The position numbers and the translations under genes are program-made. The notes under the pieces are model-generated. The model had not been told where the DNA came from and searched no databases. It saw only the letters and a program-made list of their open reading frames with translations. Shown here piece by piece: positions 30,801-60,500 of a stretch of 64,000 nucleotides of DNA. Origin of the DNA: Macrostomum hystrix (Eukaryota > Animalia > Platyhelminthes). The DNA lies in NCBI GenBank assembly GCA_950097015.1, contig CATNEN010000024.1:310001-374000 (forward strand), written 5' to 3'. Every line of letters begins with the position of its first letter. Position 1 is the first letter of the stretch.

Positions 30801-32301
30801 AGTATACCTTTAGGGTAACAGACAAGACCAAATTCAAGGGGCATCAGATAAGGGCAAGGGGTAAGGGTTTCTAATAAGAACAAGGGGTAGGGCTATCAGA
30901 TAAGGGCAAGGGGTAGGGCTATCAGATAAGGGCAAGGGGTAGGGCTATCAGATATGGGAAAGGGGTAGGGCTATAAGATAAGGGCAAGGGTTAGTGGCAG
31001 TGATATCAGATAAGGGCAACAGATAAGGTATTAGATTTAAGTATTTAAGTATTAAGATATTATTAGTCAAAATATTCATGTTTATAATAGGTAATCTGCG
31101 CCTTGTCAAACGCCCTGGCCCAGCTAATGCCGCTGTACTATTGCGCCACAGTCTGCGTCAATTCGGGTTTAGTGTCCAGCATTCACGGCTATATGAGAAC
31201 TATGGACGCGTTGAAAGACTACCTGGACGTGCAATCGTGCAAAGAGCTAGTGCGTCAGGACAAGACTCACTACTTCATCATTAGCGTAGTTGAATGCTTT
31301 AAAGATCTTACTATTGATAAGAAGTACCAGGAAGAAGGTGAGTTTATTTTTGTTTTATCCCCAAATTGGGCCGTGTAATGTCTTCATAAAATAAATTGAG
31401 TCTTCGCATAAGAGAGTCTTGACGGCACTGACGGCACGAATCGAAGAGCGGCAGGGCAGGCCGTTTAGGCCGGGAATCAAATAACCAAGAGATAAGAAAG
31501 GGGGGCTGAAGAGTAAAAGGGTAGAGGATGGGCCAGAGGGTAAGAGCTGAAAAGGACGGGGTGTGGAAAGAGAGACGAACAGCTAGCCAATCAGAGACGG
31601 GGGAGAGGAAAGAGAAGTGAAGGTCAGCTAAGAAGTTAAACATAAAAGGGGAGAGACGATAAAGTACAATAAAAGGGCGCGCGAGCGTAAACAAACTTAG
31701 AGGAAGGAGAAGCATAATAATAATTGCATGAGGGCTGCGGGCAATGGTTCATCATTTGGTGACAGTAGACCCGCAGCCAGCGAGGAGGCAATTCTGCCCA
31801 TTCCGCTGATTCCTGAGCACACACGCACACAGATACCATTTGCAGGCATACGCTCACACAGGTGTGTACATCTGCCCTGACTTTCTCATTGTCAGGCAGT
31901 GTACAACTTCACTGTGCATAGGAGGTTGGCCCTTAGGGCGTAAATTGCACGACAAGCCCCCAAGCCTTCTCTCCGCGGCTGCGCCCCAATTTAATGTTGC
32001 GAGACCTTGGTGCGATAGGCAAACACGTTGACCGCTATGTCACGAACCCCCCCCCTGGAAGAAGAATCAATAACAGGCCGTTTTATCAAATAATTAACTA
32101 AACGACTCATACTTTGGCAGCTTATTATGCGTATTCTTTAAATAAATTCAGTGGTTCGTGTAAAATGATAGTAAAAACGTGAAAGTTTTGCGATTAAAGT
32201 AGCACGAATTCAAACAATATTTTCCGCTCGTTTATAAATTTAAGCGCTTTTCTAAACTTTCAGAGTACGTGGCACCATGCCGACCGTCCCTTGACGCCTA
32301 A
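27877..32301 (+). CDS. ATRIP: ATR-interacting protein (ATRIP)-like
   Basis: Exons 27877-30121, 30557-30750, 31091-31337, 32264-32301 with consistent phases. N-terminal PPPKRFR plus acidic DPWGDD..F..ICSQ motif (compare recalled human PPSKRAR..DPFG..DFTADDLEELDTLASQ), then a coiled coil ending LETERAFSVKEI and a helical C-terminal region. Confidence 0.72.
30238..30440 (-). mobile_element. tRNA-derived CORE-type SINE (family B) in ATRIP intron 1
   Basis: Reverse complement has B box GGTTCGATTCCC followed by TGTGCCCTTTAGCAAGACACTTAAC...AAATGGGTACC (CORE-domain-like) and tail CCCAGTCCATGGACTGAACAG. Related pieces at about 49772-49850 (+), 54218-54375 (+), 51915-51985 (-), 40555-40610 and 13450-13472. 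Confidence 0.72.
30845..31030. repeat. 26-bp minisatellite in ATRIP intron 2
   Basis: Unit TAAGGGCAAGGGGTAGGGCTATCAGA. Confidence 0.9.
31385..31428 (-). pseudogene. Degenerate full-length SL exon copy in ATRIP intron 3
   Basis: Reverse complement GTGCCGTCAAGACTCTCTTATGCGAAGACTCAATTTATTTTATG shares TGCGAAGACTCAATTTATT (19 nt) exactly with the 55106-55145 copy. Confidence 0.72.
31712..32055 (-). mobile_element. SINE family A copy in ATRIP intron 3
   Basis: Same tail hairpin, (ATT)n tail and body; head partially deleted. Confidence 0.85.
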
Positions 32302-54375: not shown

Positions 54376-55105
54376 TTGAAATTTTGGTGCAGATTCTTCT
54401 CACATCTCACAATCTACTAAAATCCGGTATTTTCCAAGTGCAATATAAGTGCAAATGTTTTAATTACTTGCAGATTGTGCATCTAATTTATTTTGACCAA
54501 GCTTGCAAAGAATGTAAAAGTACTTAATTCTGTTTCATTTCATTAAAATCTGATATTAGCACCGGATATTAGCTATAATTTTATTTCGCACAGAAGATCA
54601 GATAAAATGGAAATACTTCAATTTTCGCGAATGTTCTTCGTACGAATTAGGCGCAATGTACACCCATAGCTTAAGTATTTAGCTAACTGAAAAACTACTT
54701 CATACTGTTGCTAAGCGCGAACAATAAAATTCTGAGAGTGACCAGATAGTTTAACACGAGTTGCAGGTGAGTTTAAACCTGTACTGAATAGTTTGTTGCT
54801 GTTATGTTTTTAATTTTCATGCACGACTGCGTTGCATCACAACCTTTTAACTACGTATGTCAGACACCAACTCGTTGATCTTAGGCAAATCAATTCCAAG
54901 ATAGATATTCCATTTGGTAAGTTTCATTAAGCTTGAATTCCAGCATGCCTACAAACCCGTAGCTAGCTGAAAACCAACCCAGAGGCGGGGCTGTTGAGCG
55001 ACATCTATGCACTCAGTCAGAAGGCAGTCAACAATGCACATTCCAAATAAACCACTTGTCTTTACTTCAAGTGATAACGATTTACGAAGCGAAGCGAGTT
55101 GTAGC

Positions 55106-55145
55106 CATGCAATAAATTGAGTCTTCGCAGTAAGAGAACGTCTTT
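55106..55145 (-). other. Genomic copy of the spliced-leader (SL) exon lacking a GT donor
   Basis: Reverse complement is AAAGACGTTCTCTTACTGCGAAGACTCAATTTATTGCATG, 39/40 identical to the 3' 40 nt of the Macrostomum lignano SL as recalled (GCCGTAAAGACGGTCTCTTACTGCGAAGACTCAATTTATTGCATG). It ends in the flatworm-typical AUG and is followed by GCTAC, not GTAAG. Confidence 0.8.
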
Positions 55146-55931
55146 GCACAATGGAAGTGGGTTATTTTACCTGAAGGCCTGATTTACGAATGTTTGTTTG
55201 GAATCGATGCGTTACTTCCTACAGGTTTAGGAGTTTTAAAAGAGTTAAAATGCGCTGTATGGATAGACCAAGTTAAAAAACAATAAGAAATCACAATGTT
55301 TGGGATACGCTTGGTACTAATTATGAAAAGTAGTCGCAAACGCATCTGGCCGCAAAAAACGGTACCCAAGACCCCTGAACACTCATTCCCATAGGAGCCG
55401 GAGTATGAATGATTCCTATATATGAAGATTGTGAGATAAATATTGAGAGTTTATTTGAGAGTTTTGAGAGTTTTGAGGGCCCCCCAACCCACCCAGGCCG
55501 CCCCCGGGTCGTGAGTTACAGGATTAAGTGTTGTAATTCTTTCGTATTGTCGGCAGTTCGCCAACGCGGTAGTGGGGGTTCGGGTACGGACCGCCCACAG
55601 CTTGCCGGGGGTAGAGGGGGGAAGCAGCGACCCTCGAGGCGTCCAGACACTCCAAGGAGAGACGGGATGGACTTGGAGCGTACCGACACTCGCTAAGCCC
55701 TGACTGAAGGTTTTGACTGCGAGCGGGTAGCCACTCGACAGCCCAAGAGAGAGGTAGATGATGGTCTGGAAGCGTACCGACACTTCGCAGACTCGAGGAA
55801 GACTCTGGAGGAGAAGGATGATGGTGAGTTTTTGGCAGCAGCCGAGGTTGGGCAGAGGAACAAGATTCGATAATAAAGAAATAAATAACGCGTGAATGCT
55901 TTTCTTACCGGGAGGGGTTGAACGTGGAACT

Positions 55932-55951
55932 CATGCAATAAATTGTGCTTC
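55932..55951 (-). other. SL-like 3' fragment
   Basis: Reverse complement GAAGCACAATTTATTGCATG; the last 14 nt are identical to the SL 3' end seen at 55106. Confidence 0.5.
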
Positions 55952-56537
55952 AGGCTGCGTCGTTTATTATGGATTCTACTTTCTAATGTTGTATTAGCTT
56001 CGCCAACGTTCTCGCCCTAGTACTCTGGCGGCGCGGGGCTGGCCACGGGCAGCGCGCGCAAATAAATAACCGCGTGGGGTGGGGCGAGGGCATAGGGCTG
56101 GACGGGGTAGGGCTAAGCCACGCAGGGCTGGGGTGGGGTCGGCTGCAAGCCGAGAGAGAGAGAGAAGGAGACCGGCTAGCCAATCAGAAGCCTCCTTGGC
56201 GAGAGGCCTGATTGGACTAGCGAGGACGGCACAGGGGACAGCCAATGGGCGAACGACAAACGACAAACACGCCAACGGAGGGTGGCCTAAGCCGGGGCCG
56301 GGCAGAACCGGATTGAGCAGGCGGCTGGGGTGGAAGGGCTGGAGACGCAGGGGTCGGGGCAAGGTCGTTATGAGACGCAGCTCACAACATAAGCGACTAG
56401 GCAGCCTGTCCTGGGAAGCTTGAGAGCCGGAGTTCCGTCAGCCCCCGACTCCCGTCCCAAGGACGAGGCCCCTGCTTGCCACAGCACCACAGCCAAGGCG
56501 ACCAGGGAAGGCAGGAGGACCCTATGGATTTGAGTGA

Positions 56538-56960
56538 CTGATGCCCCTGAGCACGTAAAAGGCCCCACACGAGTAGGGGTAATTCGACCTAGGACCGGCC
56601 AACACTAGAAAACCGGCCTTTCGGACGCACCCCAGTACGAGCAGCAAGGGACCAATGGGCTCAGAGGAGCATCCGATTGGCAGCGAAAACAGCCCCGAAC
56701 ACCTTTAGGCTCTAAGGGAAGCCCCGCTGAAATATGATTTTGAATGCCTGATGCCCCTGAACACCTAAGAGGCGCCACACGAGTAGGGATGCTCAGACCT
56801 AAGACCGACCCCCCCCCAAAAGCCGGCCTTTCGGCTGGACCCCAGTACGAGCAACAAGGGGCCAATGGGCTCAAAGGAGCATCCGATTGGCAGCGAAAAC
56901 AAACCCCGAACACCTTTAGGCTCTAAGGGATGCCCCACTGAAAAGAACACGATTTGGATT
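56538..56960. repeat. Two tandem about 210-bp GC-rich units
   Basis: CTGATGCCCCTGA at about 56537 and 56748; shared CCGGCCTTTCGG, CCCCAGTACGAGCA, GAGCATCCGATTGGCAGCGAAAAC, CCCCGAACACCTTTAGGCTCTAAGGGA. Confidence 0.85.
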
Positions 56961-57207
56961 TTTAACCTCCGGCCTGAATAGGCCATTGGTTTGGAACCCC
57001 GATGGGAAAGATGAAAATTTTTTTATTATTTTAACGGCAAAAAAATTGTTTTTGTCGTAGAAAAGTCGTAATATACTACTTTTGAAAAAATGATGAAAAG
57101 TAGTAGTTGGAGAATTTTATCTTTGTTCTGCCTCCGGCAGCGGTGAGTGGTACTAGCATTCTGGTTCAAAATGCCAGCGCAAAAACTACAGAGTGGCCAA
57201 GAGGGTC

Positions 57208-57226
57208 AAGAGACCGTCTTTACGGC
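57208..57226 (-). other. 5' half of the SL exon
   Basis: Reverse complement GCCGTAAAGACGGTCTCTT is an exact 19-nt match to the recalled SL 5' end and overlaps the other two copies in sequence. Confidence 0.65.
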
Positions 57227-57532
57227 CAATCCTCAAACGAGACAGAGAGCGCAAATGGGGGATGACTCAGGATGGCCCAGAGGGCCTTCTAGAGACACGC
57301 TATATTTGAACTTAAACCCTAGCGGCTGGAGAGAAGCGATCGATAGTAGGGATAGGGTTAAACCCCGCCTCAGATGTACATAGGCAGACGAAGGAAAGAG
57401 ACGAAAGGGGGGTTGGGGTACAATCGTGGAGAGTATCAGGGGCAGGGGGAAGGAGGGGGTGCAGCGATTTAGAAAGGAGAGACACAATCAGAGCAAGTAA
57501 AAACTAATCGCATAACCAAAATTCGCTACACC

Positions 57533-60500
57533 TTGACTTACTTGACTTATCTGCAGGGCGGTCCGATGGACACAGCGGGGAGGCGGAAGTCGCCCATTCC
57601 GCTAATCCCTGAAAGATTCCCTAATCGTTTCGCTGCCGCAGTGCCGCTCGTTGGGGGACGAAGCGCACACCGGCATCAAGGAGACGCTGGGCGGTTTTTG
57701 CCGCCTCACCGCGGATAAAGATATCAAGCGGGAGGATGTTCAGGAAGGCGCTGAGGCCATCGAAGGGGGCGGATGGCTGGGCGCTCATGATCATGCGACA
57801 TGCGCGACCCTGCACTATCCAAAGAGTCTCATGGCAGGTCTTAAGCTGCAGGGCGCTAGCCCAGATCAGTCCGGCGTACGAAACAGCCGGTCTGACCATA
57901 GCAGTGTAGATCCACCAAAGGCGTTTGGGGGTGAGACCCCAAGTGTTGCCTACCGCCCTGCGCAGCTGCGCCAGAATCGCAAAGGCCTTTTTGGCTTTAG
58001 CGTGGACATGAGGAGTCCAGCTGAGCCTGTGATCGAGCGTTATGCCCAAGCATTTAGTTTGCTTCTAGAAGGTGATGTCCTTTCCATACAGCTGGAGGGG
58101 GCGAATATGCCATTTGTTTTTGCTGGTGAACATGATCGCCGCTGTCTTAGACTCGGAGAGCTTCAGACCACAGCGAGTTGCCCATCTTTCAGCGTTGTTA
58201 ATAAAGTTTTGCAGAAGGTCTCGGAGGGCCTCTGGTACCGGGCCAGATGCCACTGCCGTAACATCATCCGCGTAGCCGACCTTTAGGATGGGATCCGGCT
58301 GAGAGTCCCGTAAGAGCTCGTCGATAACCATGTTCCAGAGAACTGGTGAGAGGACGCCGCCTTGTGGGCTACTTTTACAGACAGTGACCGTCCGCTGGTG
58401 TCCAAGAAGGTGTGCCGTAGCAGTGCGGTGGCGGACCATGTACATGATCCACCTCCTAAGATGCGAATGCGTGTGCCGCATACGTAGGGCCCTGTCAAAC
58501 GCCTCGAAGAGAACGTTGTCGAAGGCCCCATCAATGTCCAGGAAGATGCTGGCTGGGAGCAAAGCCGTTCCCGAGGACGGCCTTTTCCAGAGCGCCCACC
58601 AGAGCGTGGAGAGCGCTTTCGGTGGAGCGTCCCGACCGAAAAGCGTGTTGATTGTCGCTTAGCGGCATATTTTTCAGCTCCACAGAGAGGAGGCGCCAGA
58701 GCACCAGTCTCTCCATCAGTTTGACCATGGTGGAGGTTAGACTAATTGGCCGGAACGATTTAATGGAATGGCAGTCCGGGCGGCCTGGCTTGGGGATAAA
58801 TACCACCCTCGCCTCGGTCCATGCCTTCGGGACGGGTCCACGAGGTTTGCCAGCCGGAAGGTTGCCAGCCGAAGGTTGCCAGCCGGAAGGTTGCCAGCCG
58901 AAGGTTGCCAGCCGGAAGGTTGCCAGCCAGAAGTTTGCCAGCCGGAAGGTTGCCAGCCAGAAGTTTGCCAGCCGAGAGGTTTGCCAGCCGGATGGTTGCC
59001 AGCCAGAAGTTTGCCAGCCGAGAGGTTTGCCAGCCGGAAGGTTGCCAGCCAGAAGTTTGCCAGTTTGTCCCATTCCCCCCATTATTCAAGAGTTTGACTC
59101 AACTCCCTCTCCCCTCCATTTAACCGTTTCAGCGTTGATTACTTTCAGGTAGACAATCAGAAAAGCCAGACGTGACTAGTCATAAAAACATTCTCCTTTC
59201 TATTTCCAGATCAGCTAGTTGCTCAAAAAACTTCAACGAGCCAGCCGAGTCCCCGAGCCCTTATTTCATATTGATTTCGATTGAGAAGACGAAATTATGC
59301 TGCAGAAATATGTAACAGTAATTATATTCAGGAACTCAGAACCCCCACCCCCTATCATGAGTTCCCAAAAACAAAAAAGACAGAAAATGGTATTACACAT
59401 TATTACAGACTCTTGTACAAAACTATTATTACTGCTTTATTACTACGCTATTACACATGATGGCACGTGCAAAGAGTTGGAACTGTTTGAGGAAAAGTGC
59501 GACTCAATACAGTAAAAAGAATTCGGTGCAACAGCGCAACAAAATGTTTCTGTGTAACTCAAGCCGGGAAAAACTGTATTACAAAAAGCAGCACCACAAA
59601 AAGGTAGTTAAGCATTCGCCATCATCAGCTTCTGGGCAAAAGCGACTCTAAAAGTTGCTAGTGCTTACTTGTATTAAGTATAATTCATCCTTCTTTAATT
59701 ACTTCGGAACTTTTAAAAGCATTTTCATTATTAAGAGTGCCACCCAAGACCAAGATAGTAAAAATAAAATACTGAAATAAGGGACCGAACTGCAAATGTA
59801 AGAGAAACTGACAAAAACAGCAGCACCCTGAAAGTTTGAACTCGTCTAACTTCTGCCTCACAATTTGCAACGAATGTGATTATAGAAAGATTATCCCCTG
59901 GTCTTTTACCTGTAAAACAATTATGTCACTATTTCACCGCAGTATTGACAGCTTGTCATTTGATAAACAATTGCCAGCTATTACTTGCTCAAGTGATGGG
60001 CGATGCCCCTCAGTAAGGAGCGCAACGGAAAGTCAGCTGGCAGTCCACCGTCATTCCAGCGTTGCGTGATGCGCAGGACCATCGCGTTGCTCTGCGCGTA
60101 CTTCTGCCTCTCTTGTGGCACTTCGCCCGCGGCAGCTCGCTGCATCAGTAGGCGCTGATGGTCTTGTTCCTTTTTGAGGCAACTGAGTAGCCTGAAGACT
60201 TGCGGACTACTGCACGCGAGCACGACTTGAAGCCTTCGATGCCAAGCTTCCACACAGTTGTTGGTCCGATGCCGACCCTCAAGCGTGCGCTGACATTCCA
60301 GAAGGCTAGTTCAAACCTTGGTTGCCGCCTCTGGCCATTTGGAAGACGCCGACCAATCCATTGATCCTCAAAGTAATTCGCCACCGGCGTGAGCTGCTCT
60401 GGGAAACCAGGCATCATTATCAGGTTGTCAAACGATGTGGCGACGGAGTCAATGGGCACAAATGCCAGAGCAGTGAGGCAGCGCATCCAGAGCGATATTT

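Follow-up and report, generated by a model that had tools for sequence, protein, structure and literature searches.

Spliced-leader copies in a Macrostomum hystrix contig very probably mark a nest of dead retroelements, not spliced-leader genes

The cluster of spliced-leader (SL)-like sequence at 55-57.5 kb of the window (the whole stretch of 64,000 nucleotides analysed here) is very probably a nest of dead retroelements on the minus strand, and not a group of SL genes. Its three SL-like pieces are SL copies borne within the terminal repeats of two retrotransposons, and the pieces at 57.2 kb and 55.1 kb belong to one and the same SL copy, now divided, and are not separate members of an array. 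They appear as separate pieces of 19 and 40 nt because a retroposon splits the SL copy of one of these terminal repeats, LTR-A, between SL nt 19 and 20. The features are as follows.

57531..59082, minus strand: degraded non-LTR (LINE) element, whose 3' tail ..ATAAGTCAAGTAAGTCAAGG stops at 57531, directly against LTR-A
57208..57530, minus strand: LTR-A, 5' part; U3 at 57530-57227 (starting TGTAGCG) plus SL nt 1-19 at 57226-57208
57208..57221, minus strand: target-site duplication, copy 1; AAAGACGGTCTCTT, equal to SL nt 6-19 and single in intact LTR-A copies
56390..57207, minus strand: SL-site-specific non-coding retroposon, 5' part; starts GACCCTCTTGGCCAC, with a 210-bp tandem duplication at 56529-56943
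55529..56389, minus strand: LTR-B, a probable solo LTR of a second family, 861 bp; TGTTG...ACAACA, 4-bp duplication CTTA
56187-56175, minus strand: CCAAT-type motif in LTR-B, the same 13-mer as in the 31.4-kb repeat
55952-55932, minus strand: decayed SL relic GAAG-CA-CAATTTATTGCATG in LTR-B
55146..55528, minus strand: retroposon, 3' part; its final ~145 bp (55290-55146) occur in the window copy only
55132..55145, minus strand: target-site duplication, copy 2; AAAGACGTTCTCTT, 13 of 14 positions identical to copy 1
55057..55145, minus strand: LTR-A, 3' part; SL nt 6-45 at 55145-55106 plus a ~49-nt tail ending ...GTAAAGACA at 55057
31374..31714, minus strand: LTR-C, a 341-bp LTR-like repeat of a third family; TG...CA, starting at the tail of a SINE/LINE-like repeat

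All three minus-strand pieces that a sequence-only reading had placed here were present. The sequence at 57226-57208 is exactly GCCGTAAAGACGGTCTCTT, the 5' 19 nt of the 45-nt SL, and is the sole match to this 19-mer in the window at up to three mismatches (0 in 100 shuffles). SL homology in the 55.1-kb piece begins at 55145 with one G>T change, and positions 55136-55106 match the 3' 31 nt of the SL exactly, a match absent from the shuffles. At 55945-55932 there is an exact match to CAATTTATTGCATG, for which shuffles gave 0.05 matches at up to one mismatch; once the neighbouring GAAG-CA is included, local alignment to the SL scores 16, where shuffles score 9.6 +/- 1.2 and 1 of 1000 attained 16. 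The SL copy reported at 31.4 kb is likewise real and spans 31426-31385.

LTR-A is the LTR of a BEL/Pao retrotransposon. In searches of the M. hystrix genome (220,453,370 bp, 42 contigs), its 5' part showed 83-91% identity to more than 22 copies of an LTR of ~383-400 bp, while its 3' part aligned with the 3' end of all LTR-A copies, with 87-98% identity to the closest. The genomic copies form co-oriented pairs 3.6-6.8 kb apart, with TG..CA ends and 5-bp duplications (e.g. CCACC, AGCGT, TGAAT and ATCTT); a primer-binding site, TGGCGCCCGAACG, comes after the 5' LTRs, and the 3' LTRs have a purine tract, ...TTTGGGGGAG, before them. With BEL/Pao elements LTR-A thus shares its TG..CA LTRs and 5-bp target duplications, together with adjoining open reading frames for DUF1759 gag (E 5e-32), the Peptidase_A17 Pao protease (6e-14) and DUF5641 (3e-14), all above the Pfam cut-offs, whereas the match to the rve integrase core was weak (E 4e-6, 27.4 bits, under the Pfam cut-off of 32.6 bits). 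Three LTR-A elements have LTR pairs that are 100% identical, indicating a young lineage. Relative to its family, the LTR-A in the window is one old LTR without an internal part, i.e. a solo LTR. The flanking 5-mers do not match (CAAGG versus AGTGG), which counts against a simple solo-LTR history.

Each LTR of the LTR-A family contains the host 45-nt SL exon in full, as a DNA copy lying ~50 nt short of the 3' terminus of the repeat. This copy ranges from 45/45 down to 37/45 matching positions and always ends at ATG, followed by GCTTC or ACTTC and never by GTAAG. Purifying selection on it was ruled out, since identity between old and young LTR-A subfamilies is 84% in the SL copy and 95% in U3. 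The sequence-only reading had also placed a LINE 3' end beside the SL region, and this stands: the element abuts at 57531, and its minus-strand open reading frames at 58065-58562 (E 2.8e-19) and 58531-59082 (E 6.6e-8) match RVT_1. A chimeric LINE-LTR retrocopy, considered as the cause of this abutment, was ruled out by the order of the parts.

The remaining SL-like sequences lie in two other repeat families. LTR-B has at least 40 genomic copies with sharp TG..CA ends at the same positions and 82-97% identity, and its SL relic is conserved in 14 copies. Among the LTR-B copies there was only one close pair (C1:9561306 and 9562814, separated by 1.5 kb), and no coding partner was identified. LTR-C has at least 194 candidate genomic copies at 74-89% identity; its SL copy matches at 38/45 positions and lies 11 nt from the 3' end of the repeat. 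SL 26-mers occur inside LTR-C copies on contigs C5 and C2, and LTR-C is related to a further repeat, L030, in the sequence upstream of its SL copy. Comparison of LTR-A, LTR-B and LTR-C outside the SL revealed no homology except one 13-mer CCAAT-type motif. Of the CCAAT/GC-rich module said to precede two of the window pieces and the 31.4-kb copy, what holds is therefore the 13-mer CTGATTGGCTAGC, found at both 56187-56175 and 31594-31582; there is no wider homology between those upstream modules, and upstream of the 57.2-kb piece lies something else, the U3 of LTR-A.

The SL copies may have entered these LTRs by reverse transcription of trans-spliced RNA. The element RNA would first have been SL-trans-spliced, minus-strand strong-stop DNA would then have copied the SL at the 5' end of that RNA, and after strand transfer the copied SL would have become the start of R in both LTRs. 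Capture of this kind would explain the extent of the homology to the SL gene, which begins at base 1 of the exon and breaks off precisely at the splice junction. Counting against the model, strand transfer would have to proceed, inefficiently, despite a 3' flap without homology. As cDNA-derived relics, the copies also suggest that the SL exon is 45 nt long, 10 nt more than the published leader.

A different reason for the presence of the SL would be function, the LTR families retaining SL-like sequence where transcription begins, which would let their m7G-capped RNAs pass as trans-spliced mRNAs and be translated or handled as such. Such mimicry would accord with the occurrence of the relic in at least six repeat families, with a TATA-like box ~33 nt upstream of SL nt 1 in L002 and L030 (relatives of the 31.4-kb family), and with the persistence, among young LTR-A elements, of a short CCGT..ACGG stem and of the terminal TTGCATG. 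We nevertheless consider it improbable. The SL segment is less conserved than U3 between the old and young LTR-A subfamilies (84% versus 95%), and the elements with identical LTR pairs keep only 37-38 of its 45 positions. The trimethylguanosine cap comes via trans-splicing, and a DNA-encoded SL copy would not receive one. In addition, the TATA-like box of LTR-A lies ~69 nt upstream of the SL copy, so present-day transcription may start ~35 nt before the copy, and the box is too far upstream for such mimicry. A gain of SL-type translation by the elements, as envisaged in the sequence-only reading, is not favoured.

The SL copy of the window LTR-A is itself interrupted. A retroposon of ~1.2 kb separates SL nt 19 from SL nt 20, and SL nt 6-19 are present on both sides. 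Outside LTR-B it contains no open reading frame of at least 120 aa, and Rfam and tRNA searches of it gave no match. Its 5' part has three homologous copies elsewhere in the genome. In other copies of the 3' part, homology ends at query position 189-235 of 380; the last ~145 bp of the window copy have no genome match, its 3' junction pattern occurs in the window only, and it carries no A-tail beyond an ambiguous AAA. The 5' junction recurs: AAAGACGGTCTCTT|GAC(T/C)CTCTTGGCCAC was also found at C35:56955, C1:23260209 and C1:13634209, and a fourth further copy, at C3:8380841-8380881, agrees with the window at 93% from SL nt 1 through the junction to element nt 20. The step from SL nt 19 to element nt 1 is therefore common to five loci, the window included. 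The flanks of the four non-window loci are known from pattern matches and BLAST coordinates only; none of these copies continues into LTR-A U3, so that only the window copy has an LTR-A context, and the C1:13.63-Mb copy has SL-gene-like upstream sequence. The C1:23.26-Mb copy (1446 bp) and the C35 copy (1105 bp) end in an A-tail, AAAAAGAA or AAAAAAAA, followed by the duplicated target GACGGTCTCTT and then by the rest of the SL.

Because the same junction occurs at four loci outside LTR-A, two of them with an A-tail and a duplicated target, the retroposon is SL-site-specific. It would have landed in the LTR-A SL copy between SL nt 19 and 20, duplicating SL nt 6-19, possibly through target-primed reverse transcription by a LINE enzyme acting in trans and primed on the TTT facing SL nt 6-8. 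LTR-B, a probable solo LTR, would have entered the retroposon afterwards; the C35 and C1 copies of the retroposon are without LTR-B. No autonomous partner was identified, the one candidate examined being L005, an SL-preceded APE-type LINE. Its endonuclease query matched at least 125 places, none beside the C1:13.63-Mb junction, and no link was found.

An early view of the 2.06-kb interruption as an ordinary low-copy repeat was overturned by the junction searches. It would still be untargeted if the element had spread through ectopic recombination or gene conversion, or if the 19-nt SL head were built into the retroposon. The missing A-tail and unique 3' end of the window copy fit such an origin, and an SL head joined to the element in all five copies is what a built-in 5' end would give. 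However, the SL head in the window is continuous with LTR-A U3, as in intact LTRs, and SL nt 6-19 stand on both sides of the insertion; in two other copies an A-tail leads into these bases again and then into the remainder of the SL. For gene conversion, arms of 19 and 40 nt would offer very little homology. Even if spread were untargeted or the head built in, the downstream flank would be an SL copy at no fewer than three loci. We accordingly judge untargeted spread or a built-in head very unlikely, and retain insertion at the SL site.

Genuine SL genes in this genome look different from any of the window pieces. They read ...TTGCATG|GTAAGACACCG, with an Sm-like site and three stem-loops, and fold with a z-score of -3.8 into three hairpins with UAUAUUUUUAG between; folding of the SL copy in the LTR was no better than that of shuffles (z -0.8). 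Arrays of SL genes with an 11.6-kb period, each unit containing a U1 snRNA, are found on contigs other than that of the window, namely C15, C17 and C42. Genome-wide, the 3' 26-mer of the SL has 230 sites at up to three mismatches, against 0 for a reversed control, and the SL intron was present in 19 of the 27 perfect SL copies read. Downstream of the window pieces stand GCTACAAC at 55105, AGTTCC at 55931 and, after the 57.2-kb piece, the retroposon. Rfam gave no match, either for the whole window at gathering score or for 54.9-57.6 kb with the threshold relaxed to E 1, and ARAGORN found no tRNA. A relic array of three decayed, co-oriented SL RNA genes 0.8-1.3 kb apart, as the sequence-only reading had entertained, is hence scarcely credible: the pieces are indeed co-oriented, and SL genes are often tandem, as here, but none of the three is followed by the SL intron GTAAGACACCG, a GT splice donor or an Sm site, Rfam finds nothing, the sequences around them are LTR-A and LTR-B, dispersed families whose members have TG..CA ends and target duplications, the true arrays have an 11.6-kb period with a U1 snRNA in each unit, and two of the pieces are halves of one SL copy. 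The other suggestion of that reading, an undescribed repeat family placing SL-like sequence near its transcription start, was right in substance, the repeats being LTRs of LTR retrotransposons, and its mention of SL-targeting retroelements was apt, as one sits inside the window SL copy.

Incomplete SL sequences have already been reported from LTR and LINE elements of parasitic flatworms, with integration of retrotransposon copies after trans-splicing of their transcripts as the proposed origin (Mol Biol Evol 2025, PMC12582326). Our observations agree in that SL-like sequence occurs in mobile elements without other SL-RNA features, and in the origin proposed. Whereas that paper sets aside 597 such loci from parasitic species in a few sentences, the host here is free-living, and the relic comprises all 45 nt of the exon, sits at a constant position within the LTR of one defined BEL/Pao family (including three elements with identical LTR pairs) and is also present in at least five more repeat families. 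We found no description in the literature of an SL exon copy in the LTR as a BEL/Pao feature. In dinoflagellates, relict spliced leaders encoded in the DNA of genes show that trans-spliced RNAs have returned to the genome by reverse transcription; retroposition there recycled cellular genes, whereas the carriers here are retrotransposon LTRs, in which the relic is inherited at each replication cycle.

To our knowledge, published SL-targeting retroelements are RLE-type only and belong to trypanosomatids and nematodes, and we found none from flatworms in the literature. Like NeSL-1 of Caenorhabditis and SLACS/CZAR/CRE of trypanosomatids, the M. hystrix retroposon has one fixed insertion point in the SL exon with a target duplication, and shares with them a multicopy target as safe haven. 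Those elements are autonomous and encode a restriction-like endonuclease (PMC4640811), whereas the flatworm retroposon is non-coding, measures ~1.1-1.4 kb and has an A-tail in two copies; its place in the window is an SL relic inside an LTR, not an SL gene.

M. hystrix has ~230 SL-like sites and only ~19 SL RNA genes, and genomic SL copies can therefore pass for SL genes or for evidence of trans-splicing; such mistaking of genome-encoded SL copies has a precedent in M. lignano (PMC8629364). One locus here displays two interactions between retroelements and trans-splicing, in that LTR elements preserve the SL as a fossil at the expected 5' end of their RNA, and a small retroposon uses the SL sequence as an address. 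The presence of the retroposon in an LTR SL fossil shows that a short DNA sequence is recognised and not the gene context. Tentatively, and as a real possibility rather than the expected case, Macrostomum may host an independently evolved retroposon system specific for the 45-nt SL DNA anywhere, for which LTR SL fossils would be extra landing pads, and the young BEL/Pao lineage may have mutated the target, SL nt 6-21, and so escape.

The sequence-only reading had reported three minus-strand pieces of the host spliced leader (SL), and all were recovered at the positions it gave:

57226-57208, minus strand: 5' 19 nt of the SL, an exact match to GCCGTAAAGACGGTCTCTT
55945-55932, minus strand: exact SL 14-mer, extending to a 21-nt local alignment
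55145-55106, minus strand: SL nt 6-45 with one change, the last 31 nt exact

The last 31 nt of the 55145-55106 piece had no match in shuffled sequence, and the 21-nt alignment of the 14-nt piece was reached in 1 of 1000 shuffles. The additional SL copy claimed at 31.4 kb also proved real. The leader agrees with the M. lignano SL CGGTCTCTTACTGCGAAGACTCAATTTATTGCATG, which is 35 nt long (PMC8629364).

That these pieces are the relic of an SL gene array, one of two alternatives put forward in the same reading, was rejected by comparison with bona fide SL RNA genes. A genome search with an SL 29-mer matched 36 places, and 19 of the 27 perfect copies were followed by GTAAGACACCGTTGATCC. All but one of these intron-bearing copies (18/19) belong to tandem arrays on contigs 15, 17 and 42 whose ~11.6-kb units each include a U1 snRNA gene. 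The predicted fold of the SL RNA has three hairpins, with an Sm-like UAUAUUUUUAG between them (z -3.8). Donor, intron and Sm site were absent from every SL piece in the window and an Rfam search returned no matches, thereby refuting the array reading. Within the genuine arrays, ~300 bp separate the SL RNA gene from the U1 snRNA gene (L006:1838-2000 in a contig 15 unit; RF00003, 151.7 bits). Three array units (L012, C17:37.7 kb; L025, C42:43.2 kb; L027, C42:73.8 kb) share a ~7.3-kb insertion, 97.5% identical over 1.5 kb, that terminates in ...GTAGTAAACA, 12 nt short of SL nt 1; it represents either a single event multiplied through unequal crossing-over or another element that targets the SL locus.

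One repeat of ~383-400 bp (LTR-A; 57530-57208 and 55145-55057, minus strand) accounts for the sequence on the upstream side of the 57.2-kb piece and on the downstream side of the 55.1-kb one. It has more than 22 genomic copies, many of them in co-oriented pairs spaced 3.6-6.8 kb apart. An alignment of 22 copies defined its ends as TGTAGCG at the start and GTAAAGACA at the finish. The 5' copies are directly followed by TGGCGCCCGAACG, the 3' copies are preceded by ...TTTGGGGGAG, and 5-bp duplications border both pairs and lone copies. Adjoining open frames match DUF1759, Pao peptidase A17 and DUF5641, with a sub-threshold match to the integrase core (rve), and three elements carry identical LTR pairs. 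LTR-A is the LTR of a BEL/Pao LTR retrotransposon. The SL exon, running from GCCGT through ATG, is present in every LTR, ~50 nt short of the LTR end. Its identity to the SL is 45/45 or 44/45 in an older subfamily that includes the window copy, grading via 43 and 42 to 37-38/45 in a young subfamily. In both subfamilies the ATG starts a conserved 8-codon frame, M-A/T-S-T-R-F-A-S-stop (LTR-A alignment, L032-L053).

Homology between LTR-A and the SL gene breaks off precisely where the exon ends, as is characteristic of copying from spliced RNA. We infer that RNA of the element was trans-spliced, which would give it the SL as its 5' end; the SL would next be copied into strong-stop cDNA, and strand transfer would bring it to the U3/R border in each LTR, where it would be inherited thereafter. 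An origin via trans-spliced element RNA has also been proposed in parasitic flatworms, for 597 loci that were discarded (PMC12582326). Between the old and young subfamilies the SL copy is 84% identical versus 95% for U3, giving no sign that it is maintained as a functional mimic of the SL.

In the window, the SL copy of LTR-A is split after nt 19 by 2,062 bp (57207-55146), with SL nt 6-19 on both sides (AAAGACGGTCTCTT and AAAGACGTTCTCTT). This interval includes LTR-B, an 861-bp TG..CA repeat (56389-55529) flanked by a 4-bp CTTA duplication, with at least 40 copies sharing identical sharp ends, which we read as a solo LTR. The 14-nt SL piece lies within LTR-B and is kept in 14 close copies; a CCAAT-type motif occurs ~200 nt upstream of it, and the 31.4-kb repeat has the same 13-mer ~155 nt ahead of its own SL copy. 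Without LTR-B, the insert is ~1.2 kb of non-coding sequence including a 210-bp tandem duplication, and three homologues elsewhere in the genome all lack LTR-B.

Junction tests overturned the possibility that this insert is an ordinary low-copy repeat. A 29-mer joining SL nt 6-19 to the first 15 nt of the insert was present at three other loci, while a 35-mer with LTR-A context occurred in the window only. BLAST with the junction region identified these three loci and one on contig 3. The match begins at nt 6 of the SL at one of the four loci and at SL nt 1, or a few bases ahead of it, at the others, and nowhere continues into the LTR-A U3; at C1:13.63 Mb the upstream sequence is SL-gene-like. 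Two loci, with inserts of 1,446 and 1,105 bp, terminate in AAAAAGAA or AAAAAAAA, after which come GACGGTCTCTT and the remaining SL. An A-tail and an 11-14-nt duplication fit target-primed reverse transcription. The junction and end patterns at the five loci, those outside the window being known from coordinates and short pattern matches, argue for independent insertions of a retroposon at an identical position within a 45-nt sequence in at least two cases and probably in all five. The window copy has no A-tail, and its last ~145 bp (55146-55290) match nothing elsewhere in the genome; 3' transduction and internal priming are possibilities. Five of the seven SL changes between the LTR-A subfamilies fall within nt 6-21, the retroposon target, which is suggestive of escape by the young subfamily, although not significant on its own.

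SL relics are also carried by other repeats. The SL 3' 26-mer had 230 genome matches at ≤3 mismatches, while the reversed 26-mer had none genome-wide at that threshold. Several matches form co-oriented pairs spaced 1.8-7.2 kb apart (for example C1:10196334/10203548, C8:3485179/3492339 and C1:19308511/19312666), suggesting that SL relics are present in several additional LTR families. The 31.4-kb repeat, LTR-C, is 341 bp long, TG..CA, with at least 194 candidate copies; its SL copy lies 11 nt short of the repeat end. In its relatives L002 and L030 a TATA-like box ~33 nt before SL nt 1 fits the SL being the RNA 5' end, i.e. the U3/R border. At L005 (C7:9273418-9276446) a complete SL copy lies directly upstream of an APE-type LINE ORF (PF03372, E 3.8e-11; at least 125 genome matches to the endonuclease); L005 is a LINE whose 5' end carries an SL relic. 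The start of both LTR-A (57531) and LTR-C (31715) directly abuts a non-LTR element's 3' tail, with no matching target duplication at either; these tails have only a 41-nt 3' similarity in common, and the repeat at 31.7-32.05 kb has ~4,450 candidate genomic copies.

The GCCGT start of the SL copies precedes the published 35-nt Macrostomum leader by 10 nt. It recurs in three or more unrelated repeat families (LTR-A; L002/L030; LTR-C), as read at L002, L030, L036, L052 and window positions 57226 and 31426, indicating that the SL exon is probably 45 nt.

To our knowledge, the SL-targeting elements described in print are LINEs of the RLE type, from nematodes and trypanosomatids. The planarian relatives given in PMC4640811 target rRNA and tRNA genes, and no flatworm SL-targeting element was found in the published literature. 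SL relics in flatworm retroelements have already been published, in passing (PMC12582326); the window contributes a copy of the retroposon within an LTR-borne SL fossil.
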